A stretch of 64,000 bases of DNA from the IMG/VR virus record IMGVR_UViG_3300046787_000286, positions 62,001-126,000 of that record; one strand, 5' to 3'. This document shows positions 2,623 through 15,194 of the stretch, one piece after another. The number at the start of each line of letters is the position of its first letter. Position 1 is the stretch's first letter. The notes under the pieces were generated by a model. It ran no database searches. It had not been told where the DNA came from and worked only from the letters and a program-made list of their open reading frames with translations. A program made the position numbers and the translations under genes.

Positions 2623-2627
2623 ATTTT

Positions 2628-2701
2628 TGGTAGCCTGTAGAGGTTACGATCCTCTGTCGCTCGATTATCAGTCGAGTGCTCTACCATTGAGCTAACGGGC
2701 T
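2628..2701 (-). tRNA. trnI: tRNA-Ile(GAT)
   Basis: loop CTGATAA, encoded CCA. Confidence 0.9.
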
Positions 2702-2885
2702 ATTTTACTTTTACCTTTTGCAGGATATCTTTTCGCATCAAAAAGATTCTTGGGGAATTCTCTTGATGCACTGCAATATACTCTACCCCATCTATCCACT
2801 GGGAGAGTTTTGTGTTATCACATACAACACGTTCGCGATTTAGTTTATTCTCAAATGTCACGGGTTTCATCTCCTCCTCCCTTCA

Positions 2886-2960
2886 TGGCCGGTCCTGCAG
2901 GAATCGAACCCACATCTCCAAGTTCGAAGCATGGCATTCTATCCATTGAACTAAGGACCG
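2886..2960 (-). tRNA. trnR: tRNA-Arg(TCG)
   Basis: loop CTTCGAA, encoded CCA. Confidence 0.9.
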
Positions 2961-2964
2961 AAAA

Positions 2965-3144
2965 TTAATTACCTTCTAACTGCTCTATTTTATCGGCAGC
3001 TTCTTCAAGTAAGTCAGCAATGCGATCGGGCTTGCCCTCTTCTACACTCTTGCGTCCTTGAATCTGTCGCCTAATCTCTGCTCGCTTACGCAAGCGAAAG
3101 ACTAGGCTTTGTTCACTAACAGGTAGATGACTTTCGTCAATCAT
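2965..3144 (-). CDS. small hypothetical protein (59 aa, below track cut-off)
   Basis: MIDESHLPVSEQSLVFRLRKRAEIRRQIQGRKSVEEGKPDRIADLLEEAADKIEQLEGN; ATGA overlap with the ligase stop. Confidence 0.7.
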   Translation of the reverse strand: MIDESHLPVSEQSLVFRLRKRAEIRRQIQGRKSVEEGKPDRIADLLEEAADKIEQLEGN

Positions 3145-4046
3145 ACTGTTTCCATATAGTTACGTACCCACTCTAAACGAGCTTGCTCGTCCATAGCAGT
3201 ATACTCAACAATGTTAGCACGGATAGCATCCACTAGTGGATAGTATTCTTCGTCTAGTTGGTGCTTGATGTCTTTGTTCAAGTCTACTAACTTGTCTGTA
3301 CGTGGATTGCGAGCAACCCACTTTGAAGTCAAGTAGTATGGTGACTTGATTTTAGCACTCACACCTTCGTTAGTGTAGAATACAAAACCTTCGTGCTTGC
3401 ATTCCTTTGCTAAGTTCTTCAATGCAGCCATTGAAGTTGTTACACTTTCTGGCTTGTGACAGTTAAACAACAATGCTAAGTCTTGCAACACACATGGATC
3501 GTGCCCCACTTTAGATCCAAACTCGTTTTCGCGATAGCCTAAAACATACATGCCTGCCTTCTCTGGAACGATATGAGGGTCACTTGGGTGAACACACTCG
3601 AACATCACAGTCATACCGTCTAGTTCATCGTCACAAAATGCTATACGCCAATCAGCTAAAGAACCATGAGTCAACATCATTTCTTTTGCCAGGTCAACGT
3701 ATGGGCTGTCAGTGCTACCTGTAGTAGAAACTAGCACGTCGCCGTTATACCAAGTTATAGCAACCATAAAGCCGTTGACCTTACGATATGCTAGCACTTC
3801 TGTATCGTCGGCCAGCACTGGTGCTTCCTTTTCGATACCGTAGTTGTAGATCTTTGTGAATGGATATGACACTAGGTTGAAATCCTTGTCCACAATAGAC
3901 CCACGACATTCAGCAATGTATTCATTCCACAGGTTATCGTAGAACACTTTCTTCTTGTACTTTAGCACGTAGATACCGTCGCCGGCTTCCTTCATGTTAA
4001 CCAAGTTAGAAGTAGCTACATACTCCTTCAACTCATCTTTAAACAT
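3141..4046 (-). CDS. T4 Rnl1-like RNA ligase
   Basis: motif I RKVNGF, FECVHP, EGFV, KIKS; CRG and FTKIYNYG N-terminal motifs; likely start MFKDELKEY. Confidence 0.85.
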   Translation of the reverse strand: MFKDELKEYVATSNLVNMKEAGDGIYVLKYKKKVFYDNLWNEYIAECRGSIVDKDFNLVSYPFTKIYNYGIEKEAPVLADDTEVLAYRKVNGFMVAITWYNGDVLVSTTGSTDSPYVDLAKEMMLTHGSLADWRIAFCDDELDGMTVMFECVHPSDPHIVPEKAGMYVLGYRENEFGSKVGHDPCVLQDLALLFNCHKPESVTTSMAALKNLAKECKHEGFVFYTNEGVSAKIKSPYYLTSKWVARNPRTDKLVDLNKDIKHQLDEEYYPLVDAIRANIVEYTAMDEQARLEWVRNYMETV

Positions 4047-4500
4047 ACCAAATTTCCTTAAAGCCTTCTTCTTCAGTTGGCATTTCAAAATTGTTAATCA
4101 TTGAACGCATAACGTTCTCCGGAATTGCCTTACCTGGTCGGCTAGCTAATCGACGTTCGTGTTCTTCCTTTTCGGGAGTACGAAACACAACAGCAATCTT
4201 TTCATAGTTAGACAAAATTGCCAACTTAGACTTGCGAGATTTTGCGCTAGTATTAGTTTGATCCCAAATACAATCTACTTGGTTCGCGTGGCAAACTCGT
4301 GCTTGATTGTCCATCAACTTCATTGCAATAGGCGCATATTCTTTGAACACTTCGTTGTAAGTTTTACCTACACGTTCTGCATGCTCGTCAATAAAACGAT
4401 CGCTAGAGATAACCGGAACACCATCAGTCCAATTTTGTGCTTTGATCCAAGTGCTCTTACCTGAACCTGGCACACCAATTAACATGTAAACTTTTGGCAT
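4039..4500 (-). CDS. polynucleotide-kinase-like P-loop protein (AAA_33)
   Basis: GVPGSGKST, SSD, WDQTN, lid RLASR. Confidence 0.85.
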   Translation of the reverse strand: MPKVYMLIGVPGSGKSTWIKAQNWTDGVPVISSDRFIDEHAERVGKTYNEVFKEYAPIAMKLMDNQARVCHANQVDCIWDQTNTSAKSRKSKLAILSNYEKIAVVFRTPEKEEHERRLASRPGKAIPENVMRSMINNFEMPTEEEGFKEIWYV

Positions 4501-4509
4501 AATTACTCC

Positions 4510-5052
4510 TTAGTGGTGAGCTCGAATCTCACCTTTTAATGCGTCTGCAATCATGTCGTCCATGTTGCTAACCACACGACCTGTTGCGTCAAAAGCTACA
4601 TCACGGGCACGATACTTTTCCATGCCAGTCTTTGCACCATGTACATGACCGTAGAAGTGAACACTACCACGATGCATTTGGTCCCACTCCCAGATAGGGT
4701 AGTGCAACATGATAACAATTTGACCTTCATGGTTGTAACGCAAGTACTGATGCACTTCCTTAAACTCTGCACGGAATGCAGGGTCATTCAACAACTTGCG
4801 GTCATGATTGCCTTCAACCAAAATCTTACTACCATTCAACCGGCGCAAGATATCCACTGCGTCTTTTGCTGGCAAGAAAGCAAAGTCACCCAAGATGAAT
4901 GTTTCATCTTCTGGCGCAACACTTGCGTTCCATTCTTTAATCATCTTTTCTCGCATGTCAGCCACATCAGTGAAGCCTGCCCGAGTTACTGGGCAAAACT
5001 TCATAATGTTTGCGTGACCAAAATGCAAGTCACTTGTAATCCATTTTGTCAT
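4510..5052 (-). CDS. calcineurin-like metallophosphoesterase
   Basis: DLHFGH, LGDF, GNHD, HYP, GHVH motifs. Confidence 0.9.
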   Translation of the reverse strand: MTKWITSDLHFGHANIMKFCPVTRAGFTDVADMREKMIKEWNASVAPEDETFILGDFAFLPAKDAVDILRRLNGSKILVEGNHDRKLLNDPAFRAEFKEVHQYLRYNHEGQIVIMLHYPIWEWDQMHRGSVHFYGHVHGAKTGMEKYRARDVAFDATGRVVSNMDDMIADALKGEIRAHH

Positions 5053-5054
5053 TA

Positions 5055-5252
5055 TTATTCTCCGATGTATTCACGAACCCAATCAAAGTGAGCTTCGTCT
5101 GCTTTAACCCACTTGAACTGTTCTCGACGACGGTTGATTTTGTCAAAGTCAAAACAGATAAAGATCCAGCCCTTGTCCTCTGAGAACATGACGGTATTTT
5201 GGACTTTGACAATCTGTACGATTTTGTCTTTCATCTTTGCTACTATCATCAT
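5055..5252 (-). CDS. hypothetical protein
   Basis: operon position behind a sigma70 promoter. Confidence 0.6.
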   Translation of the reverse strand: MMIVAKMKDKIVQIVKVQNTVMFSEDKGWIFICFDFDKINRRREQFKWVKADEAHFDWVREYIGE

Positions 5253-5281
5253 GCTAGATCCTTTTGCTTTGTTATGTGTAT

Positions 5282-5310
5282 ATTATAGCAAATCGGGCAT
5301 TTTTGGTCAA
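5282..5310 (-). promoter_or_regulatory. sigma70-type early promoter of the RNA-repair operon
   Basis: TTGACC-17-TATAAT. Confidence 0.8.
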
Positions 5311-5330
5311 CCAAAAAATGTAGTACTTAA

Positions 5331-5813
5331 TTACACATCGCCTTCGCGGGTTGGACTATCTTCTAATCCCCACTCAACGCCATTGATTGTGTGGGGCTCT
5401 GCTTCGTCATAAGTCCAACCCAGCGCCTTCATCATCTTGTGCTTGACAAGTAAGTTAGGACTACGAAATGCTTCAGTGTCATCAAAGCCTAACATTACCC
5501 CAATTTCTGCAACTGCACCCGAACGGCACACTCCTGCGTGGCAATGAACAATAACGTTCATGCGTTGACCGTATGCTTTGAGCAACAAGTCAACCAATTG
5601 CTTGGCCTGTTCATCTGTGCATTTGCATTCGTCTGGAAAGTTATCTTTGTCCTCAGCATCCAAGAATTCAAACTGATGAACTTCACGGAATTCATACTTG
5701 GGAACAGGAAACTCGTATGCTGGATCTACAATCTGAATCAGCATAGAGTTAATGCCGGGGGTAATATGAAACCCTTGACGAATGTCACTCATGCTTACAT
5801 TTTGAATCCACAT
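5331..5813 (-). CDS. protein-tyrosine/dual-specificity phosphatase-like protein
   Basis: HCHAGVCRS (CX5R) and FLD acid loop. Confidence 0.8.
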   Translation of the reverse strand: MWIQNVSMSDIRQGFHITPGINSMLIQIVDPAYEFPVPKYEFREVHQFEFLDAEDKDNFPDECKCTDEQAKQLVDLLLKAYGQRMNVIVHCHAGVCRSGAVAEIGVMLGFDDTEAFRSPNLLVKHKMMKALGWTYDEAEPHTINGVEWGLEDSPTREGDV

Positions 5814-5835
5814 AAAAAATCTCCTTTAATGCGTT

Positions 5836-5864
5836 ATTATAACACTAAAGGAGATTTTGGTCAA
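5836..5864 (-). promoter_or_regulatory. sigma70-type early promoter
   Basis: TTGACC-17-TATAAT. Confidence 0.8.
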
Positions 5865-5889
5865 GTACTACCTTAGTACTACTTTTGTT

Positions 5890-5964
5890 TGGTACCTGGT
5901 GACGGTTTCGAACCGCCGACCCGCTGCGTGTAAAGCAGCCGCTCTCCCCCTGAGCTAACCAGGC
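5890..5964 (-). tRNA. trnV: tRNA-Val(TAC)
   Basis: loop TTTACAC, CCA. Confidence 0.95.
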
Positions 5965-5972
5965 AAATTGTT

Positions 5973-6046
5973 TGGAGCGGGGTGCGGGAATCGAACCCGC
6001 AACTTCAACTTGGAAGGATGGTGTTTTACCACTAAACTAACCCCGC
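5973..6046 (-). tRNA. trnG: tRNA-Gly(TCC)
   Basis: loop CTTCCAA, U73, CCA. Confidence 0.95.
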
Positions 6047-6054
6047 ATTAAATC

Positions 6055-6130
6055 TGGCTCCCCAGCGTGGGATCGAACCACGGACACCTTGATTAACAGT
6101 CAAGTGCAACTACCGCTGTGCTACTGGGGA
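6055..6130 (-). tRNA. trnN: tRNA-Asn(GTT)
   Basis: loop CTGTTAA, CCA. Confidence 0.95.
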
Positions 6131-6139
6131 ATATTTTTT

Positions 6140-6229
6140 TGGCGGTGCGAAAGAGACTCGAACTCTTAAAGCGGCTTTCACCACTCGACGGATTAGCAAT
6201 CCGCTCCAATACCATTATGGGACCGCACC
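6140..6229 (-). tRNA. trnS: tRNA-Ser(GCT)
   Basis: loop TTGCTAA, long variable arm, G73, CCA. Confidence 0.95.
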
Positions 6230-6233
6230 AAAC

Positions 6234-6608
6234 TTAACAAGGTATCGAACTTAGTTCATCTACCTGCTGCCTAGTAATATAATGAACTTTTTTACCGTCC
6301 ATAATACTTATAGGCATATAAACTACTCTATCTATGTCTGACAGATAAACTGCCCAACAGTCGATTAAATCTCTATTAATAGCAACACCCTTCCCGTTTA
6401 CCATAGAAGATGCTGCTATTTCATATCTATCACCTCTTCCCGGTGATCTATATTTTATTTGCAATCTAAACAATCTACCCTCTGAATCAACTGCTATACA
6501 GTCAACTGGATTATAGTCATCAAACGGTGTAAACGCGGTAAATCCTTTGGTGTATAAGTCTCCTATAACTTTAATAAGTCCTAGGTTGCCTTTTTCATTA
6601 ACATTCAT
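6234..6608 (-). CDS. free-standing PD-(D/E)XK homing endonuclease (I-Ssp6803I-like)
   Basis: GNLG...PFDD...VDCIA...LQIKY motif order; inserted between tRNA genes. Confidence 0.75.
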   Translation of the reverse strand: MNVNEKGNLGLIKVIGDLYTKGFTAFTPFDDYNPVDCIAVDSEGRLFRLQIKYRSPGRGDRYEIAASSMVNGKGVAINRDLIDCWAVYLSDIDRVVYMPISIMDGKKVHYITRQQVDELSSIPC

Positions 6609-6685
6609 GTGTATCTCCTGCTATGTTTATTTAGCAGATGATGCATCTGTTTGAATTACCGTCCTGCCCGTCTTCCAATTATTCT

Positions 6686-6714
6686 ATTATATATCCAACT
6701 GCATGTGCAGTCAA
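6686..6714 (-). promoter_or_regulatory. sigma70-type promoter inside the tRNA array
   Basis: TTGACT-17-TATAAT. Confidence 0.8.
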
Positions 6715-6720
6715 CTATTT

Positions 6721-6803
6721 TGGTACCCCTGGTCAGATTCGAACTGACATATTATACTCCTCTGTTTGAGAGAGGCGACTTTACCAAGTTTGTCCACAGG
6801 GGC
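6721..6803 (-). tRNA. trnL: tRNA-Leu(CAA)
   Basis: loop CTCAAAC, variable arm, CCA. Confidence 0.95.
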
Positions 6804-6808
6804 ATTTA

Positions 6809-6883
6809 TGGTGGATGTAGCTAGATTCGAACTAGCGGTAGGCACCGTATGAAGATGCTGCATTACCACTTTGCTATACATCC
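6809..6883 (-). tRNA. trnM: tRNA-Met(CAT), non-initiator type
   Basis: loop TTCATAC, no GGG/CCC anticodon stem, CCA. Confidence 0.85.
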
Positions 6884-7000
6884 ATATAGAAGCACTCTCA
6901 AATGCAGGCCTAGGAGGAGTCAAGCTCTGAAACCTTTGCGTATGCATCCACTAGGGTCTCTTCTCCCGCTTTGACTTATGCTAAGAATACTTCTATATGG
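6882..7000 (-). ncRNA. stem-clamped spacer RNA A (between His CCA and Met 5' end)
   Basis: about 17-bp terminal stem CCATATAGAAGTATTCT/AGAGTGCTTCTATATGG with G-U pairs on the minus strand. Confidence 0.65.
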
Positions 7001-7073
7001 GGTGTTAGATGGGGAACGATCCCATACTATCGCTTTCACAGAGCAATGTGCAGACCACTACACTACTAACACC
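6998..7073 (-). tRNA. trnH: tRNA-His(GTG)
   Basis: loop CTGTGAA, G-1/C73, CCA. Confidence 0.9.
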
Positions 7074-7085
7074 ATAAATATTTTT

Positions 7086-7250
7086 GTGAAAACTTACTAC
7101 AGTCAAACACCAGCCGGATTAGACTTTCAATTGAGTCTAAGTGATGATGGCGTGTGTTGCATTATAGTTTACGACACTTACGATTGTGAACTTGTCATGC
7201 GCTATTTCACTAACGTCAATCGAGCTCTACGCTTTATCAACAATCTCTAA
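7086..7250 (+). CDS. small antisense-orientation hypothetical protein (54 aa)
   Basis: GTG start 5 nt after the late-promoter motif ATAAATA (7074-7080); the rest of track ORF 6978-7250 overlaps tRNA-His. Confidence 0.5.
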   Translation: MKTYYSQTPAGLDFQLSLSDDGVCCIIVYDTYDCELVMRYFTNVNRALRFINNL

Positions 7251-7252
7251 TA

Positions 7253-7381
7253 CCATATAGAAACACATTCTTGACGTAAAGGGTCTTTTCATCGCGCTGG
7301 TTAGGCTGCTTCATAGTGAGACTCAACTATTAACCAAGTTGCTCGAAGTCTACTATCAATGATGAATGCATTTCTATATGG
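7253..7381 (-). ncRNA. stem-clamped spacer RNA B
   Basis: CCATATAGAAATGCATTC/GAATGTGTTTCTATATGG terminal stem. Confidence 0.65.
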
Positions 7382-7566
7382 CATTTGTAAAGCCGGCTCA
7401 CTTTGAGCACCCTCGTCCTCCACGGACGGAGTTCTATTGTCATCATCAGTAGCATCCAACAACGCAGGGCCCATTGTTATCTTACTCTACCAACTTATCG
7501 CGTCCCTTGCTCATACCCGTCGGTAATCACTCAGGCTTTCATTTAAACTACAGCTTAACAAATACC
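7379..7566 (-). ncRNA. 188-nt structured RNA closed by a GGTATTTGTTAAGC/GCTTTACAAATGCC stem
   Basis: 14-bp terminal stem ending in ...GCCA; internal hairpins; no plausible ORF. Confidence 0.5.
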
Positions 7567-7692
7567 ATATGAAAACATTCTGTTGTGCTTGAAACAGTGA
7601 CAACCCATCTTCCTGGCAACTTTTACCTGTATAGTCGACTTCAGGGTTACTCGATGAACTCCAGTGTAGTTGTTCAGAATGTTTACATATAG
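7565..7692 (-). ncRNA. stem-clamped spacer RNA C
   Basis: CTATATGTAAACATTCTG/CAGAATGTTTTCATATGG terminal stem. Confidence 0.65.
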
Positions 7693-7792
7693 CAAGCTCA
7701 TTGTAGGCAGGGCTCGAACCTGCACACAGTCCTTACGGATAATGTCGCCCCTATAACGGGGCAATGTCTACCAATTCCATCACTACGAGCTC
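7690..7792 (-). pseudogene. Leu-type class II tRNA-like RNA with non-canonical anticodon loop and a CTA end
   Basis: D-arm GTGATGGAATTGGTAGACA, T-arm GCAGG-TTCGAGC-CCTGC, GCCCC-GTTATA-GGGGC hairpin, bulged acceptor stem. Confidence 0.6.
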
Positions 7793-7840
7793 CTGGAGTT
7801 AATTACTCTCCAGCATGGGTGTTACCTGCAGATAACACTT

Positions 7841-7949
7841 ACCATATGTAAACACACTAACGAACCTGGCTGTGGGCCGCGAACCCACTGTTTTCGCGTG
7901 GCACCAGCAAGTATTGCCACAATTACTGGTTAATGTGTTTGCATATGGT
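7841..7949 (-). ncRNA. stem-clamped spacer RNA D (after Lys CCA)
   Basis: ACCATATGCAAACACATTA/TAGTGTGTTTACATATGGT terminal stem. Confidence 0.7.
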
Positions 7950-8019
7950 AGGGCTGCGGGGTAATGATCCCCGTTCTACTGGTTAAAAGCCAGTTGCTTC
8001 ACCTTAAAGCTTCAACCCC
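7946..8019 (-). tRNA. trnK: tRNA-Lys(TTT)
   Basis: loop CTTTTAA, CCA. Confidence 0.95.
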
Positions 8020-8022
8020 ATA

Positions 8023-8098
8023 TGGTCCCTCTGGTGGGAGTCGAACCCACACGTCACGGATTAAGAGTCCGGCATGCTGCCTTAACATCTCAAAGGGA
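8023..8098 (-). tRNA. trnK: tRNA-Lys(CTT)
   Basis: loop CTCTTAA, CCA. Confidence 0.95.
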
Positions 8099-8207
8099 TG
8101 GATTGTAAAAATTGTCTTTTACGTGCCATCCCGGACCATACAGGGTACAGGGATGACACTAACGTTTACCTGAACGTTTCATATCAAAGTTTCCTTATAA
8201 AAAATTT

Positions 8208-8283
8208 TGGTGCCGAAGAATGGATTTGAACCAGTGACACACGGATTTTCAATCCGCTGCTCTACCAACTGAGCTACATCGGC
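8208..8283 (-). tRNA. trnF: tRNA-Phe(GAA)
   Basis: loop TTGAAAA, CCA. Confidence 0.95.
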
Positions 8284-8290
8284 AATTGTT

Positions 8291-8364
8291 TGGTGCTCTC
8301 ACCAGGTATCGATCCTGGGTTTCTACATTACCAATGTAGTGTAATGCCTTTATACTATGAGAGC
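8291..8364 (-). tRNA. trnT: tRNA-Thr(GGT)
   Basis: loop TTGGTAA, CCA. Confidence 0.95.
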
Positions 8365-8619
8365 TTATTCTTCGTCGACTTCTTCTGAGTCGATTACTAC
8401 AATATCTTCTGCATCGATGTCTTCTTCATCGATTTCGTCGAGTACAACTTCTGCTTCTTCAACTACAGGTGCAGCCACAGGTTTCTTAGGTCTACCCCAT
8501 GCCGAGTAACTTGCACCTTCTACTCTACCGCTTACATTCGGTTCAATTTTTTGAATAGTGCCTCCACGAGCTAAGAACTCCTGGATAGCAAGGTCGGTTG
8601 AATTGTCTCTGTTACTCAT
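8365..8619 (-). CDS. hypothetical protein with acidic C-terminal tail
   Basis: AAGGA RBS, start MSNRDNST; IQEFLARGG motif; D/E-rich tail. Confidence 0.7.
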   Translation of the reverse strand: MSNRDNSTDLAIQEFLARGGTIQKIEPNVSGRVEGASYSAWGRPKKPVAAPVVEEAEVVLDEIDEEDIDAEDIVVIDSEEVDEE

Positions 8620-8637
8620 ATGTTCCTTTAAGTTAAT

Positions 8638-8713
8638 TGGTCCGGCGTGCAGGAATCGAACCCACATTCATGAGGTAGAAGCTCATTGTACTATCCATTG
8701 TACTAACGCCAGA
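8638..8713 (-). tRNA. trnR: tRNA-Arg(TCT)
   Basis: loop CTTCTAC, CCA. Confidence 0.95.
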
Positions 8714-8715
8714 TA

Positions 8716-8816
8716 TGGTAGGAGCGGTGGGAATTGAACCCACGTTAACTGCCTTATCTAGACAGTGCTTACGGCTGTATAAGGGCCGCCCTTAGGCCAA
8801 CATTAGCAACACTCCC
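8716..8816 (-). tRNA. atypical 101-nt class II tRNA with TAT anticodon
   Basis: 7-bp acceptor stem, T-arm GTGGG-TTCAATT-CCCAC, loop CTTATAC, about 28-nt variable arm, A73, CCA. Confidence 0.7.
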
Positions 8817-8907
8817 ATTGAAAAACACACTTAGACGTAGTAGTTCTTTAGTCCACTAAGATACACGACTACCACTCGTGTCATTAGTTAAATGTGTTTA
8901 TCAATGG
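8815..8907 (-). ncRNA. stem-clamped spacer RNA E (between Glu CCA and the TAT tRNA)
   Basis: CCATTGATAAACACATTT/AAGTGTGTTTTTCAATGG terminal stem. Confidence 0.65.
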
Positions 8908-8979
8908 AGTCGCATACGGGTTACGATCCCGTCTGGTCACCTTGAAAGGGTGATGACCTCACCAGAAGTCTAATGCGAC
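8905..8979 (-). tRNA. trnE: tRNA-Glu(TTC)
   Basis: loop CTTTCAA, CCA. Confidence 0.9.
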
Positions 8980-8988
8980 ATTGTTGAA

Positions 8989-9206
8989 TTTGTAAGTAGT
9001 TGAGCCACTTTTATCTCAACTTTTTTCCTGATTATACAAGTCCGGACAGGGGGCGGCATGACACTTGGGATACTAAGTCCAGCGTGGCAACCATACTGCA
9101 CCGATCCTTTCGGATCAGCCGGGAGTCGAACCCGCTTGCCTTTTACTACACAACACCTTCGAAGAATATTGAATAGCGTGACATTCTCTTGCTGACACTT
9201 ACAAAA
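8989..9206 (-). ncRNA. about 215-nt structured RNA with an internal T-arm
   Basis: terminal TTTGTAAGT/ACTTACAAA stem; GGG-TTCGACT-CCC at 9121-9133; GATCC-GAAA-GGATC hairpin. Confidence 0.55.
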
Positions 9207-9207
9207 T

Positions 9208-9281
9208 TGGTGGAGGATAACAGAATCGAACTGTTGCGAAAACCTTGCAAAGGTCCCAGGCTACCACTACATCAATCCCCC
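9208..9281 (-). tRNA. trnA: tRNA-Ala(TGC)
   Basis: loop TTTGCAA, GGG start, CCA. Confidence 0.95.
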
Positions 9282-9292
9282 GAATTTTTTAC

Positions 9293-9367
9293 TGGAGCCT
9301 TTGTAAAGAATCGAACTTCAGTTCCCGGCTTCGTAGACCAGTGTATTATCCATTATACGACAAAGGC
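9293..9367 (-). tRNA. trnR: tRNA-Arg(ACG)
   Basis: loop CTACGAA, CCA. Confidence 0.95.
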
Positions 9368-9374
9368 AAATTGT

Positions 9375-9447
9375 TAGGCCCCGGAGGGAGGAATCGAACC
9401 TCCATTGGTTGTATACGGACCGTGTTACCATTACACTACAACCGGGA
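9375..9447 (-). pseudogene. degenerate tRNA-like element
   Basis: intact D-arm GTGTAATGGTAACAC and T-arm GGAGG-TTCGATT-CCTCC; weak anticodon arm; ends in CCTA. Confidence 0.6.
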
Positions 9448-9453
9448 TATAGG

Positions 9454-9604
9454 TTTTTGAGAGTTCCAACTATCTTTCTCAAGGACTCGCCGGGCTTGTC
9501 TCGTATGAGGGAGTTTAAACTACCTTGTGTTGCTACTGGTGTGTCAGTCTCAAGAATAGGGACCTAGCGCACAAGGGACTCAACCTCTACGTCTATCTCA
9601 AAAA
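9454..9604 (-). ncRNA. about 150-nt spacer RNA closed by TTTTTGAGA/TCTCAAAAA
   Basis: 9-bp terminal inverted repeat directly after the tRNA-Thr CCA. Confidence 0.45.
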
Positions 9605-9605
9605 T

Positions 9606-9679
9606 TGGTGCCCCATAACAGAATCGAACTGCTATCCCCGGATTACAAAACCGGTGTTCTACCATTTAACTAATGGGGC
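9606..9679 (-). tRNA. trnT: tRNA-Thr(TGT)
   Basis: loop TTTGTAA, CCA. Confidence 0.95.
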
Positions 9680-9686
9680 AAATTGT

Positions 9687-9765
9687 TGGCTCCGTGTGTG
9701 AGATTCGAACTCACCTAGTCACTGATTAACAGTCAGGTCCTTGCACCTAGCTTGGATTTCACGGA
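9687..9765 (-). tRNA. trnN: tRNA-Asn(GTT), second copy
   Basis: loop CTGTTAA, CCA. Confidence 0.9.
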
Positions 9766-9772
9766 ATAAAAT

Positions 9773-9978
9773 TGGCGTTCCTTGTAGATTTTCACTACTG
9801 CTACACTAACGAGAGCGTTACAAGTCTTCCTTATCGTGCAGCTGGTTAGGCCTATTGTCAGGAGTTACGAAGCGTTTAGTATTCAGATCTGACCTGCGAC
9901 CAAGCAGCGATGCCTGTCAACTACTACTTCACCTTGCAGAGCACTGAGAGCTCGCTGTGTCATCCTTTACGGAGGAAC
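9773..9978 (-). ncRNA. 206-nt CCA-tailed RNA with acceptor/T-arm mimic
   Basis: GTTCCT/AGGAAC stem + G + CCA; GTAG-TGAAAAT-CTAC arm immediately 5' of the acceptor strand. Confidence 0.6.
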
Positions 9979-9985
9979 ATAAAAT

Positions 9986-10060
9986 TGGCGGTCCCAGGGG
10001 GTAACGATCCCCCTCCTCAGCAGTGACAGTGCTGTGTGCGTCCATGAACACCTTGAGACC
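9986..10060 (-). tRNA. trnD: tRNA-Asp(GTC)
   Basis: loop CTGTCAC, G73, CCA. Confidence 0.95.
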
Positions 10061-10065
10061 TAAAT

Positions 10066-10138
10066 TAAGAAAAACACATTGTAAGGGGTTCTCTGGTCAC
10101 CTCTACACGCTTTTGTATACGCAATGTGTCTTATATGG
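10066..10138 (-). ncRNA. stem-clamped spacer RNA F (after Tyr CCA)
   Basis: AAGACACATTG/CAATGTGTTTT stem. Confidence 0.5.
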
Positions 10139-10220
10139 TGGAGGTGGCTGGACTTGAACCAACAATGCACAAGGGCGGCGGATTTACAGTCCACTGGGGA
10201 TACCATTTTCCTACACCTCC
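10136..10220 (-). tRNA. trnY: tRNA-Tyr(GTA)
   Basis: loop CTGTAAA, variable arm, CCA. Confidence 0.95.
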
Positions 10221-10324
10221 ATAATTCTTCTGCCGACCGGACCTGCCCCGATAATATACTAGATACGTTAAATCTAGCCTTTCTAATGATACGTGCTTTC
10301 TTCACACGAATGACGACAAATTCT

Positions 10325-10408
10325 TGGTAGGACCGACCGGAATCGAACCGGTACGCATTACGCGGCAGATTTTAAGTCTGCTGTGGCTACCTATTACACC
10401 ACGGTCCC
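10325..10408 (-). tRNA. trnL: tRNA-Leu(TAA)
   Basis: loop CTTAAAA, variable arm, CCA. Confidence 0.95.
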
Positions 10409-10501
10409 ATAAATTGTTCTGGCGGTGCGAAACCATCTGCACACTTACGCCTCTTAGCTTCTCACACCCGGGTGTTTACGCTTGGGTCATCGCCTGAAAC
10501 T

Positions 10502-10592
10502 TGGTGGACAACAATGGGAATCTAACCCACTTCTCCCTCCTATGCTATTAGGAAGTTTCAGCACAGCATCAGTGCATCACGACAGTAAGTCC
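10502..10592 (-). ncRNA. CCA-tailed tRNA-like RNA with altered T-loop
   Basis: GGAC/GTCC + A + CCA; GTGGG-TTAGATT-CCCAT arm; no recognisable anticodon arm. Confidence 0.5.
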
Positions 10593-10599
10593 ATAAACT

Positions 10600-10630
10600 T
10601 GGAAGAGCGTAGGGGAGTCGAACCCCTCTA
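10600..10630 (-). pseudogene. orphan tRNA 3' fragment (T-arm, acceptor strand, U73, CCA), Cys-like
   Basis: AGGGG-TTCGACT-CCCCT-ACGCTCT-T-CCA fused to the HNH stop codon; no matching 5' half seen nearby. Confidence 0.6.
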
Positions 10631-11065
10631 CAAGTCTTCTAAATCTTTTATACTCAAACTGGCTCGGTTAGTTTTTCCACTGCCCCAGCCAGTTTGCAAT
10701 CCTTTTAGCATATTTGCTTTTGCCTCTGGGCTAGCGTTTCTGCTACCCCATGTGTCTGTTTGTGTATGACAGTTAGGACAAAGCCAAGTCACATTGTCAA
10801 TGGTATTGTTTTTTGGATCGCCGTCGATATGTTCTAACTGGAGAACTAATTTCTTGCCATTCCAATCACTAATACCACAACAACTGCACTTATACTCTGA
10901 AAATCTCTTTAGATAAGTTTTAGCATTGCCTTTATTGGCTTTGCCACTTTCCATTATAGTTTTTATCCTATAATCTTGAGTGCATTCTCTACTACAAAAA
11001 TGCCCTGATTGTTGCGAATCAAAATACTTGTATTCTGTGTTGCAACTTTTACACAATCCAATCAT
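10628..11065 (-). CDS. HNH homing endonuclease with Zn-ribbon N-terminus
   Basis: CxxC motifs; LQLEHIDGDPKNN...LCPNCH. Confidence 0.9.
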   Translation of the reverse strand: MIGLCKSCNTEYKYFDSQQSGHFCSRECTQDYRIKTIMESGKANKGNAKTYLKRFSEYKCSCCGISDWNGKKLVLQLEHIDGDPKNNTIDNVTWLCPNCHTQTDTWGSRNASPEAKANMLKGLQTGWGSGKTNRASLSIKDLEDL

Positions 11066-11107
11066 TGGTTAGTTCTCCTTGCATTTATTTAGCAAACTAA
11101 CCAATAA

Positions 11108-11182
11108 TGGTACTCCGAAGGAGAATCGAACTCCTCTTTCCGCCTTGAAAGGGCAGCGTCCTAACCGATAGACGACCGGAGC
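11108..11182 (-). tRNA. trnE: tRNA-Glu(TTC), second copy
   Basis: loop CTTTCAA, CCA. Confidence 0.95.
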
Positions 11183-11190
11183 ATAATAAA

Positions 11191-11425
11191 CACTATACAT
11201 AAACACATTGGGATGATTGACAACAACCTATCTAGGCTAACCACGCTATCGTCTAGCGACTGGCTGTCAAACACATTACAATCCTACCTGGTCCAGCGTG
11301 ACTACTGATCAAAGCCTAAGCCGATTTCCATCTTTCATGTAACATAGCACGGCTGACACGGCTGTCAACATCGCGATGCTATTGTTACCTACTGGGGCGG
11401 TAACCCAATGCGTTTGTGTATAGTG
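11191..11425 (-). ncRNA. stem-clamped RNA G (235 nt)
   Basis: CACTATACACAAACGCATTGGG/CCCAATGTGTTTATGTATAGTG, about 22-bp terminal stem. Confidence 0.65.
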
Positions 11426-11501
11426 TCCGGAACTGAATCCGGATTCACTATACAAAAATAAATTTTTAATGAACATTAGCTAGTTGCCTAACTAAGTGTC
11501 T

Positions 11502-11670
11502 AGTATAACATGATTGCCGATACTAGTCAATTTATTTGTTGCAAGTCCTTACACTTTGTAGGGTTACTTGGTATTCAGTTAGTTGCCTAACTTCCTAACT
11601 AGCCTCTAGTATAACACTCTTTTGATAAGTGGTCTACCACAAAATATTAACCCTACGCAATGTAGGGTTA
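11502..11670 (-). promoter_or_regulatory. tandem sigma70 promoters, each preceded by a palindromic box
   Basis: TTGACT-17-TATACT (11502-11530) and TAGACC-17-TATACT (11608-11636); TAACCCTAC-N5-GTAGGGTTA at 11648-11670 and a variant at about 11544-11566. Confidence 0.7.
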
Positions 11671-11691
11671 TGTAATACTTTTGTTTGTAGA

Positions 11692-11767
11692 TGGTCTCCA
11701 TAGAAGGATTTGAACCTTCACCACATGCTCCCAAAGCATGGACGCTACCAGGTTACGCCATACGGAG
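11692..11767 (-). tRNA. trnP: tRNA-Pro(TGG)
   Basis: loop TTTGGGA, CCA. Confidence 0.95.
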
Positions 11768-11772
11768 ATAAA

Positions 11773-11994
11773 TTATTTTACTTTTGGTTCTTTTGATTTG
11801 TCAAGCTCATGTGGCTCAGCAAATCTTGTAGGTGGATGGTCAAATGTTAGCCCCATCGACTTAAACCAACCTAATGGTTTCCAGTACTTGTGTATAATGT
11901 TGTTGACTATAACTAACCCAACAATGATTACAACAAAACCCATCATTGTCAATACTGACCCGGCTAAAAATACCGCTGCTTGATCCATGTCCAT
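11773..11994 (-). CDS. small single-pass membrane protein
   Basis: hydrophobic AAVFLAGSVLTMMGFVVIIVGLVIV stretch; AAGGA RBS. Confidence 0.65.
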   Translation of the reverse strand: MDMDQAAVFLAGSVLTMMGFVVIIVGLVIVNNIIHKYWKPLGWFKSMGLTFDHPPTRFAEPHELDKSKEPKVK

Positions 11995-12009
11995 AATTTT
12001 TAAAGTCCT

Positions 12010-12086
12010 TTGGAGCGGGCAAAGAGACTCGAACTCTCGACATCTTCCTTGGCAAGGAAGTGCTCTACCAACTGAGCTATACCCGC
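12010..12086 (-). tRNA. trnG: tRNA-Gly(GCC)
   Basis: loop TTGCCAA, U73, CCA. Confidence 0.95.
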
Positions 12087-12136
12087 ATTATATTTTACTT
12101 ATTATACAACACTCTTGCTGTGTTGTAAAGACATTT

Positions 12137-12213
12137 TGGTGCCGCCACGTGAACTCGAATCACGGACCTTCCGCTTATCAAGCGGATGCTCTAACCAACT
12201 GAGCTATGGAGGC
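12137..12213 (-). tRNA. trnI: tRNA-Ile(GAT), second copy
   Basis: loop TTGATAA, CCA. Confidence 0.95.
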
Positions 12214-12218
12214 ATATT

Positions 12219-12307
12219 TGGAGGAAGGATGGTAGAATCGAACTCCAACCGCTTTCGCAGTCCATCTGTTTTCAAGACAGTGCAGGGCCCAGCCCTGATA
12301 ACCTTCC
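12219..12307 (-). tRNA. trnS: tRNA-Ser(TGA)
   Basis: loop CTTGAAA, variable arm, CCA. Confidence 0.9.
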
Positions 12308-12313
12308 ATGTTG

Positions 12314-12387
12314 TGGTCTGGGTAGGAAGAATCGAACTTCCGCATCAAGTATCCAAGACTCGGAGACTACCACTATCTTATACCCAG
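12314..12387 (-). tRNA. trnP: tRNA-Pro(TGG), second copy
   Basis: loop CTTGGAT, CCA. Confidence 0.9.
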
Positions 12388-12394
12388 ATTGTTT

Positions 12395-12469
12395 TGGTGG
12401 ACCGTAGGAGAATCGAACTCCTGCTAAAGCGTTGCAAACGCCCTGTGCTACCATTATCACTAACAGCCC
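12395..12469 (-). tRNA. trnA: tRNA-Ala(TGC), second copy
   Basis: loop TTTGCAA, G3-U70, CCA. Confidence 0.95.
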
Positions 12470-12478
12470 ATAAATTGT

Positions 12479-12552
12479 TGGCACGGGAACTAGGGATCGA
12501 ACCTAGGACGACAGAGTCAAAGTCTGTTGTGTTACCTCTACACCATTCCCGA
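12479..12552 (-). tRNA. trnQ: tRNA-Gln(TTG)
   Basis: loop CTTTGAC, CCA. Confidence 0.95.
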
Positions 12553-12908
12553 ACAAATTTTTAACGCACTGTTGCCAATGCGTGTATTAAAAAGCACAGA
12601 TGTCTATGCTCTTTAATACGCTGGGTTTTTTCACACACCACAAAAGGTGCTTCTCATCCCCCAGGCCGCCCTCATTCTAGATTTTTATAGTGACTCTACG
12701 GCTCGCGTTGCCTAACCACTGTTGCTTAACCCAAGACCGGAGTCTTGCGTCTAGCCTTAAACTGTGCTGTTGCACGTTCTAGCTTCTGAGTAATGAGCGT
12801 TTGTCTTTGCTCAGAAGTTAAAGTATGCGTCCTCAACCAATCCTTCTTATCGTTGGGTATGGATTTTACTATGTCTGTCATTAATTGTCAATTCCTACTT
12901 TAGTTTTA

Positions 12909-12947
12909 CAAAACAAAAAACCCTAGGAGTTTTAGTCCTAGGGTCCT
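12909..12947 (-). terminator. intrinsic terminator (candidate attenuator)
   Basis: ACCCTAGGA-CTAAAAC-TCCTAGGGT followed by TTTTTGTTTT. Confidence 0.75.
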
Positions 12948-12969
12948 TTAGTTTGTAAGTTACTTGCTG

Positions 12970-13119
12970 TTAAGCGTAACCTGCTCCCTCGGACCCTAAG
13001 ATAATCTCTGGTGTGCGATCATTACTATTCATTCCTGATGCAAACCATACGGCGGGGCATGTGCCCAAGCCTTTAGCCTGTGTCTGGAGTGATAACGAAT
13101 AATAATGTATGTTGTTCAT
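12970..13119 (-). CDS. 49-aa leaderless leader-peptide candidate
   Basis: MNNIHYYSLSLQTQAKGLGTCPAVWFASGMNSNDRTPEIILGSEGAGYA; ATG is 6 nt after a TATAAT box. Confidence 0.55.
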   Translation of the reverse strand: MNNIHYYSLSLQTQAKGLGTCPAVWFASGMNSNDRTPEIILGSEGAGYA

Positions 13120-13125
13120 GTTAGT

Positions 13126-13154
13126 ATTATATGTGTTTATTTATACCTTGTCAA
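13126..13154 (-). promoter_or_regulatory. overlapping sigma70 and late promoter
   Basis: TTGACA-17-TATAAT with TATAAATA inside the spacer. Confidence 0.8.
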
Positions 13155-13204
13155 CCTAGTGTTGAGCTTTTATTTAGCCTTTTGGCAAAATTAGTTTGAT
13201 TATG

Positions 13205-13387
13205 TTATGATTTTCGTCTAGAACAGTTGGGATCATTGCAAACACTAATTCTCTTGCGATCACAGTGTGGACAATCTTTTGCGATCATCCATGTTTTTAA
13301 AAACATGGGTTTTTCATTCTTACCCGGTTTATCATTGCCTGAACATTGCGTGTAAATCATAATAGCCTCCTTGGCTACTATATACAA
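13205..13387 (-). CDS. small Cys-rich (Zn-finger-like) protein
   Basis: CPHC...CNDPNC. Confidence 0.45.
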   Translation of the reverse strand: MYIVAKEAIMIYTQCSGNDKPGKNEKPMFLKTWMIAKDCPHCDRKRISVCNDPNCSRRKS

Positions 13388-13421
13388 CGCCTTGCAAGTT
13401 ACTTACGTTGACACAAAAGGT

Positions 13422-13449
13422 AAAAAAGAATGCCCGCCGAAACGGGCAT
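13422..13449 (-). terminator. intrinsic terminator after the tmRNA coding piece
   Basis: ATGCCCG-TTTCGG-CGGGCAT-TCTTTTTT. Confidence 0.85.
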
Positions 13450-13835
13450 GGTTGTTTAGGTTACAAGGTAAGTCCTACCCCGGGTGCATGGGTTATTAAG
13501 CCAATACAGCAGCACGACGAGCGATTTTTACACCGCGAGCGTTGATAGCTACTTCACCTTTTGTATTTGCGTTTGCATTTACGTTTTTTTGCGTCTACGG
13601 CCGAGTTCCCCCAACCCTACGGCTTCTGCTTTGCCGAGCTGTCCACTTGTTTACTTGTTGCCCTGTCGAAACCATGGCAGGCCCATTATAAAACACACTA
13701 TTCCGTTATCCCACGTCTAGAACGATAACTGGGGCTCCGTAGAGCTAATGTGTTTTATGGTGGACCTGGCGGGAGTCGAACCCGCGTCCAGAACACTTTT
13801 CTCTTTGCTTCTTTCCTTACGGTTTTTACAGCAAT
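13450..13835 (-). ncRNA. ssrA: circularly permuted (two-piece) tmRNA
   Basis: acceptor piece ending GCGGGTTCGACTCCCGCCAGGTCCACCA (13758-13835) precedes the coding piece starting GGGCCTGCCATGGTTTCGAC (13684); G3-U70; tag ORF ANANTKGEVAINARGVKIARRAAVLA (13496-13576); promoter TTGACT-17-TATAAT at 13842-13870. Confidence 0.9.
13683..13760 (-). ncRNA. tmRNA intervening segment, equivalent to stem-clamped spacer I
   Basis: CCATAAAACACATTA/TAGTGTGTTTTATAATGG stem. Confidence 0.7.
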
Positions 13836-13872
13836 ACAACAATTATATATGACTTCTTTTAAAAAGTCAATA

Positions 13873-13895
13873 GAAAAGCCCACCGAAGTGGGCTT
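13873..13895 (-). terminator. intrinsic terminator
   Basis: AAGCCCAC-TTCG-GTGGGCTT-TTC. Confidence 0.8.
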
Positions 13896-13915
13896 AATAG
13901 TTAATCTAGTTTAGA

Positions 13916-14464
13916 TTAGAAGCCGAAACTTAGACCTAAACCAAATGCTTTCTCTTTGATATCCTGAGCAGAACGGCTTGCATTTAAGTTAACTGCAACA
14001 TTCTTTGCGACTGGCAAAGAGTATGTTGCAAATGAAACTGTTTGCTTAGTACGTGCGCCGTCTTCAGTTGAACCTACACGAGTCTTTGCACCCAACAACA
14101 AGAAGCCTGGACCGACTGGGCGACCATAAGTTGCACCAACTAAGCCATAGTTGAAACTTGCGCCACCGTTGAAGCCATTGTCATGACCAGCACCGATGAA
14201 TGGAGTAATACCTGCGATGTTAACCTTGTTGTTAGCAACAGTAGTTTCCAAACTGTTCACAACAACGCCGTCATTAAAACGTGCGGTTCGAGATTGCAAG
14301 TTGACTTGGTAGTCACCGAAGCCTTTTCCAGCACGAATATATTGGGCTGTGCTGTCAGTTGCACCTTTGCGACCTTGTACGTTTTCAACGTCAACTGATA
14401 CAAAGTCTACTGCAAAAGCAGAGCTAGAAATGGCCAAAGCCAAGATTGCGAAGATTTTTTTCAT
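13916..14464 (-). CDS. outer-membrane beta-barrel protein
   Basis: MKK signal peptide with AFA cleavage site, alternating beta-strands, C-terminal GLSFGF (BamA signal); sigma70 promoter at 14504-14532. Confidence 0.75.
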   Translation of the reverse strand: MKKIFAILALAISSSAFAVDFVSVDVENVQGRKGATDSTAQYIRAGKGFGDYQVNLQSRTARFNDGVVVNSLETTVANNKVNIAGITPFIGAGHDNGFNGGASFNYGLVGATYGRPVGPGFLLLGAKTRVGSTEDGARTKQTVSFATYSLPVAKNVAVNLNASRSAQDIKEKAFGLGLSFGF

Positions 14465-14546
14465 GTAATTTCCTTTTAGTTAAAATGACTTGCGTCACTT
14501 TACATTATATATTCGTAGCTACGTTAAGTCAAGTAAAAACGACAAA

Positions 14547-15101
14547 TTACTTGTTGGTGTCTTCTACAGGAACCCATCCTAATTTAAAAAAGTCTTCTCG
14601 GATCTCATCTGTGACACAGCTTTCACTAACATACTTGACAATGTCCATGCCTTGCTCTAGAGCCGATGCTATCTGCTGTTCAGTAAGCTCGCCTTTAATT
14701 CCTGAGCAGTACCAATCAATGTAGTCCCCAGACTCTACCATGTCAGCAACAATACCCCCGGCATAACGCCAGGAGCAAGAGTAAGTTTGCCCTTTCAGCA
14801 GCGGCCACACATCATTCTTTTGCCAGTCTTGATTGCACAAGGCAGCATAGATATTTTGTGCATAGCTTTCACGAGACTTAGCTTTGTCGCAGATCCACTC
14901 AGTGCTACGAAGATCATATTCCAAATTGTTCTGTTGCCACTCGGGCTCGGCTTCTTTTTTCTTAACCATATCACTCCACACACGCTCCCGCTCAATGGTT
15001 TGTCGAACTTCTTCATCAGTGTTGGGATCGCGCCCTTCTGCTATTACATCGTCGATGCGACACTTGCTGTGAAAGGTACCTTTAATGGGACTTGAGTTCA
15101 T
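14547..15101 (-). CDS. hypothetical phage protein
   Basis: long ORF downstream of a tRNA and promoter. Confidence 0.7.
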   Translation of the reverse strand: MNSSPIKGTFHSKCRIDDVIAEGRDPNTDEEVRQTIERERVWSDMVKKKEAEPEWQQNNLEYDLRSTEWICDKAKSRESYAQNIYAALCNQDWQKNDVWPLLKGQTYSCSWRYAGGIVADMVESGDYIDWYCSGIKGELTEQQIASALEQGMDIVKYVSESCVTDEIREDFFKLGWVPVEDTNK

Positions 15102-15119
15102 ATAGCTAAGAAAGTTAAA

Positions 15120-15194
15120 TGGTGCGACTGGAGGATTACGATACCTCGACCCAGCGATTATGAGTCGCTTGCTCTTCCTCTGAGCTACAGTCGC
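15120..15194 (-). tRNA. trnI: tRNA-Ile2(CAT), lysidine type
   Basis: AGCGA-CTCATAA-TCGCT arm typical of Ile2; CCA; promoter at 15203-15231. Confidence 0.8.

Follow-up and report, generated by a model that had tools for sequence, protein, structure and literature searches.

A 206-nt unit of a freshwater phage tRNA array joins a tRNA-like acceptor/T-arm end to a covarying non-tRNA interior

Genomic setting

The element described here lies in a 214-kb IMG/VR virus record (IMGVR_UViG_3300046787_000286), which comes from fresh water and is estimated to be about 62% complete. We analyzed bases 62001 to 126000 of that record, a stretch of 64,000 nucleotides that we call the window. The window carries a large tRNA array on its minus strand, extending from about 2547 to 15194. 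The 33 genes that ARAGORN identified in the window all lie on the minus strand; they comprise 32 tRNA calls, one of which (224-312) is located outside the array, and a permuted tmRNA. In nearly all of the tRNA calls whose 3' end was read, an encoded CCA is followed by a short A/U-rich spacer. A search of the 214-kb record (~62% complete) detected no gene for a CCA-adding enzyme. The permuted tmRNA is of the two-piece type (13405-13850, minus strand) and matches RF04321 with 91 bits. The tRNA arrays of related phages are heavily rearranged. The following open reading frames (ORFs) are interspersed with the tRNAs.

2039-2530, minus strand: RNase H-like ORF, between tRNA blocks
3141-4088, minus strand: Rnl1-family RNA ligase, between tRNA blocks; conserved in 186 viral contigs
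5331-5813, minus strand: DSP/PTP-like phosphatase ORF, between tRNA blocks
6234-6608, minus strand: PD-(D/E)XK nuclease, between tRNA blocks
10628-11065, minus strand: HNH endonuclease ORF, inside the array, 650 nt upstream of the 206-nt element

A 206-nt unit with tRNA-like ends

One unit of the array, at 9773-9978, received no call from ARAGORN or from Rfam, either at gathering thresholds or at E < 10 on the isolated stretch. On the minus strand it reads 5'-GUUCCUCCG...GUAG-UGAAAAU-CUAC-A-AGGAAC-G-CCA-3'. The original prediction, which was made from the sequence without database searches, had described a GTTCCT...AGGAAC-G-CCA closure with a GTAG-TGAAAAT-CTAC arm in the position of a T arm, along with the spacing of a regular array member. 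Both descriptions held. The closure and the arm are present on the minus strand, and homologs have identical ends. The element sits between a tRNA-Asp gene (ending in GCCA) upstream and a tRNA-Asn-like unit downstream, with the same 7-nt AUUUUAU on both sides, so that its spacers and boundaries are those of the neighboring tRNAs. Its parts are listed below in 5' to 3' order, where element position p corresponds to window position 9979-p.

9773-9978, minus strand: whole 206-nt RNA unit; homologs end identically
9979-9985, minus strand: 5' leader/spacer AUUUUAU, after the CCA of tRNA-Asp; U at -1
9973-9978, minus strand: acceptor 5' strand GUUCCU (positions 1-6), pairing with 9777-9782; invariant in all copies
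9963-9972, minus strand: 10-nt linker CCGUAAAGGA, where a D arm would be; GG (positions 14-15) invariant
9933-9962, minus strand: 5' strand of rod P2, with P2a UGACACAGCGAG, bulge CUCUC, P2b AGUG, bulge CUC, and P2c UGCAAG (RNAalifold)
9869-9930, minus strand: long hairpin P3, with a variable but paired stem and the invariant loop UUGGUC (9898-9903)
9864-9868, minus strand: junction strand GUAAC, from P3 to P4; invariant in genomic copies
9828-9863, minus strand: hairpin P4, with UCCU/AGGA, a 7x8-nt internal loop, GGC/GCY, and the loop CUAACCA (9843-9849) (RNAalifold)
9799-9824, minus strand: 3' strand of rod P2, abutting the T arm directly, without a variable loop
9784-9798, minus strand: hairpin GUAG-UGAAAAU-CUAC at the T-arm position; covarying stem, invariant loop
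9773-9783, minus strand: A196 (facing C7), acceptor 3' strand AGGAAC, discriminator G, and encoded CCA; 100% invariant
9766-9772, minus strand: 3' spacer AUUUUAU, preceding the tRNA-Asn-like unit at 9690-9765

The closure consists of six Watson-Crick pairs (G1-C202 to U6-A197) followed by a C7.A196 mismatch, and the hairpin at the T position has four base pairs and a 7-nt loop with U at loop position 1 and A at position 5. The stem of this hairpin covaries: it is GUAG/CUAC or GUGG/CCAC in genomic copies and AUAG/CUAU in a transcript contig (X22). Directly 5' of G1, UUUAU is found in all three genomic copies. Bacterial RNase P prefers U at -1, a G1-C72 pair, a purine at position 73, and CCA. 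In the element, U(-1), G1-C72, G73, and CCA are invariant among copies, and we therefore read the termini as a handle for processing and stability.

The resemblance to tRNA is confined to the ends and is imperfect there. Whereas a standard tRNA has a 7-bp acceptor stem and a 5-bp T stem, the element has 6 bp, a C.A mismatch, and 4 bp. Its T-loop, UGAAAAU, contains the equivalents of U54 and A58 only, without those of U55 and C56. The pair equivalent to 3:70 is U3-A200, a U-A pair that is invariant in all copies, and no D stem can be drawn in the 10-nt linker. We also counted a composite pattern (a 6-bp closure, N-CCA, and an in-register hairpin within a span of 100 to 300 nt), which matched once in the 64-kb window, at the element itself, versus 0.13 expected per shuffled window. 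This count is weak on its own because the pattern was chosen after the fact; it is the homologs that decide.

Homologs, contexts, and distribution

An exact-word scan of metagenome contigs, using a word that is unchanged in transcript variants, returned three homologous loci (L088:256-461, L089:962-1168, and L090:7281-7487). Since L089 and L090 represent the same phage (99.99% identical), the number of independent genomic copies is three: those of the window, L088, and L089, which are about 85% identical. Elsewhere, the L089/L090 phage and the genome of the window have proteins in common at 75 to 83% identity. A covariance model built for the element (R1) scored 224 to 254 bits on the four copies.

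Similarity among the copies starts at G1 and stops at A206, and the flanks are unrelated. In the window the element stands between tRNA-Asp and the tRNA-Asn-like unit, in L088 it stands between tRNA-Ile and tRNA-Asn, and in a fourth context, a metatranscriptome contig (X36), it is flanked by two other tRNAs. In L089 a TATAAT box lies 6 nt upstream of G1 and another promoter lies downstream. Because its ends are exact in these differing contexts, the element behaves as a discrete module that is relocated in the manner of a tRNA gene.

The element has a sporadic distribution. We ran R1 on 90 sources, on 21 records, and then on 50 records. Among 71 related phage records, R1 found the element in one, which was the window's own, and it is missing from the other 70, two of which are near complete. 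The element is therefore dispensable for the lineage. Nor did a blastn comparison with 80 loci anchored on the neighboring RNA ligase detect a relative, and a DNA search of 20 whole related records revealed no copy beyond that of the window. Matches in INPHARED phage genomes were to the flanking tRNAs only. Three exact patterns had no match in viral contigs, and two exact-pattern scans of genome contigs likewise returned none. Two other candidates were rejected: a fourth exact pattern hit one viral contig (L092), a chance match that R1 did not confirm, and an 8-bit R1 score on L093 was noise.

A covarying interior

We derived a consensus fold by running RNAalifold on an alignment of the element copies (A1). 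It consists of the acceptor/T minihelix, the rod P2, and the hairpins P3 and P4, which branch from a three-way junction. The rod occupies the place of the D and anticodon arms. It is made up of three segments separated by pyrimidine bulges, and the three-way junction is located at its distal end. P3 is a hairpin of about 22 bp with internal loops.

Covariation across copies supports this fold. In the three distinct sequences, pairing holds in 97.9% of cells and nine pairs have both sides changed, versus about 40% pairing and zero to two double-change pairs in a partner-sliding control. Compensatory changes occur in four helices. In P2 they fall at alignment columns 17:182, 18:181, and 20:177, while in P4 the pair 127:139 is found as G-U, G-C, and A-U. 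A transcript variant (X15, X23, and X24) contributes three more in P3, at 59:99 (U-A to G-C), 68:92 (A-U to G-C), and 74:83 (G-C to C-G). The search for covariation among homologs that the original prediction had proposed thus returned nine compensatory pairs from genomic copies plus three from metatranscriptome variants. Conservation is distributed unevenly over the element, which is 80% invariant overall. P4 and the junction are 93% invariant, whereas in P3 only 44 to 53% of the stem columns are invariant compared with 100% of the loop.

Folding energy gave a different answer. When single sequences were folded, the stability of the element was no better than that of shuffles (z = -0.06), and the claim of a structured interior consequently rests on covariation, not on energy. 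The prediction of a structured, non-tRNA interior is therefore upheld by covariation and finds no backing in folding energy. For L088 and L089, the minimum-energy fold of the single sequence all but coincides with the consensus. The window copy has an alternative fold that is 12 kcal/mol better than the consensus, but the variants nearest to it (V1 and V4) break this alternative and fit the consensus. Many G.U pairs fit the minus strand only, and we accordingly assign the RNA to that strand.

Signal in RNA libraries

Element sequences are present in environmental RNA. Seventeen RNA-seq libraries from freshwater, riverine, and marine metatranscriptomes contained 10 to 40% of the element's sampled words, and freshwater metatranscriptome contigs carried variants at 85 to 97% identity. 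Some contigs lie entirely within the element. In X15, such a contig had a depth of 160 versus 14 to 53 on the flanking tRNAs, and in X23 the corresponding depths were 22.6 versus 2 to 5. These within-element contigs are 150 to 167 nt long and reach up to 10-fold the depth of the flanking tRNAs, while in other runs the element was not higher. No joint that skips the interior was seen among the RNA contigs, a result that covers assembled contigs only and is to that extent a weak point. We conclude that the element is likely transcribed as a discrete RNA, judging from assembled contigs of relatives in which DNA carry-over is uncontrolled. Within 8900-11300 there was no match to a minus-strand promoter or terminator, which fits cotranscription of the element with the tRNAs.

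Comparison with known RNAs

Several established RNA classes were considered as identities for the element and rejected. The element is not a tmRNA: it has U3-A200 in place of G3.U70, a noncanonical T-loop, and no conserved tag frame, and no tmRNA call was made by ARAGORN or Rfam. To our knowledge, every tmRNA carries the G3.U70 alanine identity pair. No pseudoknots were predicted in the element, and it contains no ORF of at least 60 amino acids. We also rejected a short ORF or tag peptide following the Shine-Dalgarno-like AAGGUGA, as the base at which it would start belongs to a covarying stem and the copies encode unrelated peptides. The only short frame that recurs (9 to 14 codons) shifts its register by one nucleotide between copies across an invariant loop. 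An internal reading frame, which the original prediction had raised as something to look for, is therefore not conserved. Descent from a tRNA that shares this acceptor stem found no support either, since among 516 tRNAs GUUCC starts only copies of tRNA-Phe, which are otherwise unrelated. The junction, with its GGU-loop hairpin, GUAA linker, and ACC-loop hairpin, bears what we take to be a resemblance to the 5' domain of the SRP Alu RNA. We make no claim of this likeness, given that no SRP model matched and that P3 is far too long.

Judged by analogy of parts, the closest analog of the element is species 1 RNA (rnaC) of phage T4, by design and not by sequence. Both are small RNA members of a phage tRNA gene cluster; rnaC adjoins the homing endonuclease gene segB, and the array of the element contains an HNH endonuclease ORF. 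In T4 as in the window, an acceptor-like stem closes the RNA, a T arm stands just before the 3' strand, and the interior holds long hairpins. For rnaC-like RNAs, which have no curated family, we took as defining features a location in a phage tRNA cluster, a closing stem at the ends, and a T arm next to it, all of which are found in the element. As for processing by RNase P into a discrete stable RNA, the element has the favorable determinants U(-1), G1-C72, G73, and CCA, and RNA libraries contain high-depth contigs confined to it. The two RNAs differ in their details. T4 rnaC is 139 nt long and has a canonical T arm (GGUUCGAAUCC), no encoded CCA, and two hairpins side by side, whereas the element has a noncanonical T-loop, an encoded GCCA, a rod with a three-way junction, and a tmRNA-like topology. 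There was no homology when R1 was run over the T4 tRNA region with filters off, where the best score on rnaC was 3.6 bits (E = 0.87). In T4, species 2 RNA (rnaD) is the neighbor of species 1, the function of which was still reported as unknown in 2022 (PMC9697503).

Three other systems share parts of the design. The tRNA-like domain of tmRNA (SsrA) has the same order as the element: an acceptor 5' strand, an unpaired D-loop analog, a long helix abutting the T arm, an acceptor 3' strand, and NCCA. The original prediction had called the element tmRNA-like in design, and in this order of parts the description was apt; however, the element lacks G3.U70, a canonical T-loop, predicted pseudoknots, and a conserved tag frame. 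In tRNA scaffolds, a cargo is placed inside a tRNA-type framework, and tRNA processing provides defined ends and stability. The element appears to be a natural counterpart of such a scaffold, which was engineered for recombinant RNA expression in Escherichia coli (PMC3753655). The engineered version keeps the D and T arms and carries its cargo in the anticodon stem, whereas all that remains of a tRNA in the element is the acceptor and a T-like arm. Finally, YrlA and the element are both noncoding RNAs with a tRNA-mimicking module, and the YrlA of Mycobacterium smegmatis is a substrate of RNase P and acquires CCA (PMC4201824). The bacterial and phage YrlA RNAs (RF02553), however, carry their tRNA-like domain internally, complete with D and T arms, and are associated with a Ro60/Rsr gene. 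We rejected a Y RNA identity because the element does not match RF02553 and no Ro60 (TROVE) gene or protein was found in the record's 214 kb (~62% complete).

A proposed tRNA-like handle for a non-tRNA cargo

What has been shown is the layout of the element, its precise ends, its covariation, its placement as a module, and its occurrence in RNA libraries. On balance, we lean toward reading the element as a stable noncoding phage RNA with a tRNA-like handle that enables its excision and end protection by the tRNA-processing machinery. It would form a single unit within the polycistronic transcript of the tRNA array, with termini that make up a tRNA-type acceptor/T-arm minihelix ending in an encoded G-CCA. 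Host RNase P would then cut between U(-1) and G1, and 3' trimming by an exonuclease would halt at the CCA. The paired, CCA-ended termini could in turn shield the RNA from decay. The functional cargo, and presumably the active part, would be the 174-nt non-tRNA interior made up of P2, the junction, and P3/P4. This cargo probably acts via the invariant UUGGUC, CUAACCA, and GUAAC, which may contact a protein or RNA partner or each other.

The original prediction had included an RNase P-processed carrier RNA. Its anatomical side stands, with a minihelix, an encoded CCA, and invariant determinants, while we infer the processing itself. Given the 11-layer stack (6 bp, C.A, and 4 bp) and the noncanonical T-loop, the efficiency and site of RNase P cleavage are uncertain. 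Moreover, P2 abuts the T stem without a spacer, so that P2 may stack on the T stem instead of the acceptor doing so. In L089, where a promoter lies just upstream, 5' processing may be superfluous or may take off no more than about 6 nt.

The element is an RNA family absent from Rfam and built on an old phage design. That phage tRNA clusters contain stable RNAs other than tRNAs, such as species 1 and 2 of T4, has been known since the 1970s. Here, an independent example of the same design, unrelated in sequence to those of T4, is found in an uncultured freshwater giant phage, suggesting that launching a non-tRNA RNA from a tRNA operon by means of a tRNA-like handle is a recurrent phage strategy and not an oddity of T4. 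The element offers a structure backed by covariation, candidate functional sites in the form of invariant loops on variable stems, and environmental RNA signals, and it gives concrete mutational targets toward the function of such RNAs. For the annotation of phage tRNA arrays, it adds an RNA family, and at least one more conserved non-tRNA RNA is present in the same array (9446-9605).

Alternative readings

The original prediction had also suggested an aminoacylatable RNA and a decoy for tRNA-targeting defenses, neither of which gained support here. It is possible, but unlikely, that the element is instead a decoy or sponge whose minihelix titrates factors that recognize acceptor ends, such as a host tRNA-binding enzyme or defense toxins that cleave or modify the acceptor stem or CCA end, leaving the genuine tRNAs free to function. 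An RNA of high depth that carries only the acceptor, T, and CCA portion of a tRNA would suit this role, and the sporadic distribution is typical for counterdefense genes. T4 uses genes of the RNA ligase and phosphatase types against tRNA-cleaving defenses, and the array region of the window contains the Rnl1-type ligase (3141-4088), the phosphatase-like ORF (5331-5813), and nucleases, although this evidence is circumstantial. Anticodon nucleases are excluded as targets since the element has no anticodon loop. Furthermore, a decoy would have no need for a 174-nt interior in which P4 is 93% invariant and P3 covaries.

We consider it improbable that the element is an aminoacylatable tRNA-like or mini-tmRNA-like carrier. 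Here, a host synthetase would charge the GCCA end, EF-Tu would bind the acceptor/T stack, and the charged RNA would act on the ribosome or donate its amino acid elsewhere. The topology is that of the tmRNA tRNA-like domain (acceptor, unpaired linker, helix abutting the T arm, and NCCA), the CCA is encoded, G1-C72 and G73 are invariant, and the same phage is rich in translation RNAs, with more than 30 tRNAs and a permuted tmRNA. Against this, the 3:70 pair is U-A and not G.U, the T-loop lacks the equivalents of U55 and C56 on a stack of 6 + 4 bp, and the tmRNA models of ARAGORN and Rfam are silent on the element. The recurrent frame of 9 to 14 codons changes register between copies and encodes unrelated peptides. 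In addition, a search of the record's 214 kb (~62% complete) turned up no SmpB gene.

There is a similarly slim chance that the element is no passive scaffold for a cargo but binds or mimics tRNA ends in trans and thereby, in the course of infection, senses, sequesters, or shields the 3' ends of uncharged tRNAs. The UGGU of the P3 loop is complementary to ACCA, which is found in the P4 loop and at the 3' end of most tRNAs; allowing one G.U pair, it is also complementary to the element's own GCCA. UGGU is, moreover, the motif that pairs with the NCCA end of tRNA in RNase P RNA (L15) and in T-box leaders. Because both loops are invariant, pairing between UGGU and ACCA is beyond the reach of covariation. 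The terminus itself, judging from its sequence, resembles a chargeable GCCA minihelix. Alternatively, the element may shield phage tRNAs from defense toxins directed at acceptor ends. In either role, it would represent a new class of phage RNA that acts on the tRNA pool.

The element is very unlikely to be a decaying tRNA pseudogene or nonfunctional filler of a rearranging array. Arrays are indeed highly rearranged among relatives, most of which lack the element, and this array has other odd or truncated tRNA-like pieces. But decay would hardly keep 80% of a sequence invariant, hold its boundaries exact where the flanks are unrelated, change four helices in a compensatory manner, and leave loops invariant on stems that vary. 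The words of the element also occur in many RNA libraries.

Least credible of all is a tRNA with an unrecognized intron or mobile insertion whose spliced product is a normal tRNA: the ends are tRNA-like, an HNH endonuclease ORF lies 650 nt upstream, and 11-nt and 7-nt stretches match the end of that ORF, but no D arm follows the acceptor strand, positions 17-46 pair with 155-180 and covary, neither an anticodon nor a variable loop can be drawn, no cloverleaf forms from the flanks of any interior deletion, no group I or other Rfam model matches at E < 10, the interior is at the highest depth in RNA contigs with no joint deleting it, and the HNH similarity is nonsignificant (37 of 300 shuffles as good). 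The original prediction had named an intron-bearing tRNA as the finding that would overturn it; we looked for a D arm, an anticodon loop, a group I core, and spliced joints and found none of them. On the same pairing of 17-46 with 155-180, and with no D arm, anticodon arm, or variable loop, a plain tRNA identity (RF00005) was rejected. Descent from the nearby HNH gene, suggested by the shared GAAGACUUGUA and ACGCUCU, was rejected on the shuffle result just given.

Other unusual units in the array

The array contains further units that depart from ordinary tRNAs, all on the minus strand. The ARAGORN call at 7699-7789 is a "tRNA-???" with a 2-base anticodon, the Rfam tRNA match at 8719-8816 is overly long (98 nt, 38.5 bits), and a tRNA-Sec-like match at 12223-12307 scores 45.9 bits against a threshold of 47. 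Two inter-tRNA stretches, 8098-8207 and 7790-7945, are found at 80 to 87% identity in 11 and 5 related loci, respectively. Two more CCA-ended units with AGUUU-type spacers lie within 10423-10591 (at about 10500-10591 and at 10423-10499); neither received a tRNA call from ARAGORN or Rfam, and no homolog was found in related loci.

At 10598-11065, an orphan T arm comes directly after the HNH ORF and is itself followed by a 7-nt strand and CCA (AGGGGUUCGACUCCCCU-ACGCUCU-U-CCA). No matching 5' acceptor strand lies upstream, and the orphan T arm may therefore be the 3' half of a tRNA left by an insertion. The ribosome-binding site of the HNH ORF is located in the loop of a 10-bp hairpin.

The tRNA-Asn-like unit downstream of the element (9690-9765) has the anticodon loop CUGUUAA and was missed by ARAGORN; its 26.3 bits fall under the Rfam tRNA threshold. 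At 82% identity, it matches a stretch of Acinetobacter phage ZZ1 that carries no annotation, as well as annotated tRNA-Asn genes of other Acinetobacter phages.

A 228-nt inter-tRNA stretch at 8980-9207 includes an internal T-arm-like sequence (GCGGGUUCGACUCCCGGC) and a weak tRNA-Sec-like match (9114-9196, 21 bits). It has eight homologs with about 73 to 75% identity, one of which (L089:734-821) lies just upstream of the homolog of the 206-nt element.

Last, the unit at 9446-9605 is a conserved non-tRNA RNA of about 155 nt that is closed by UUUYGAGA/UCUCRAAA, has no CCA end, and has no match in Rfam. It has 15 homologs in related phage loci (85 to 89% identity), and 11 of its 47 predicted pairs show compensatory changes. 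In metatranscriptome contigs this RNA is deep, with depths of 64 to 94 in X15 and about 88 in X19.
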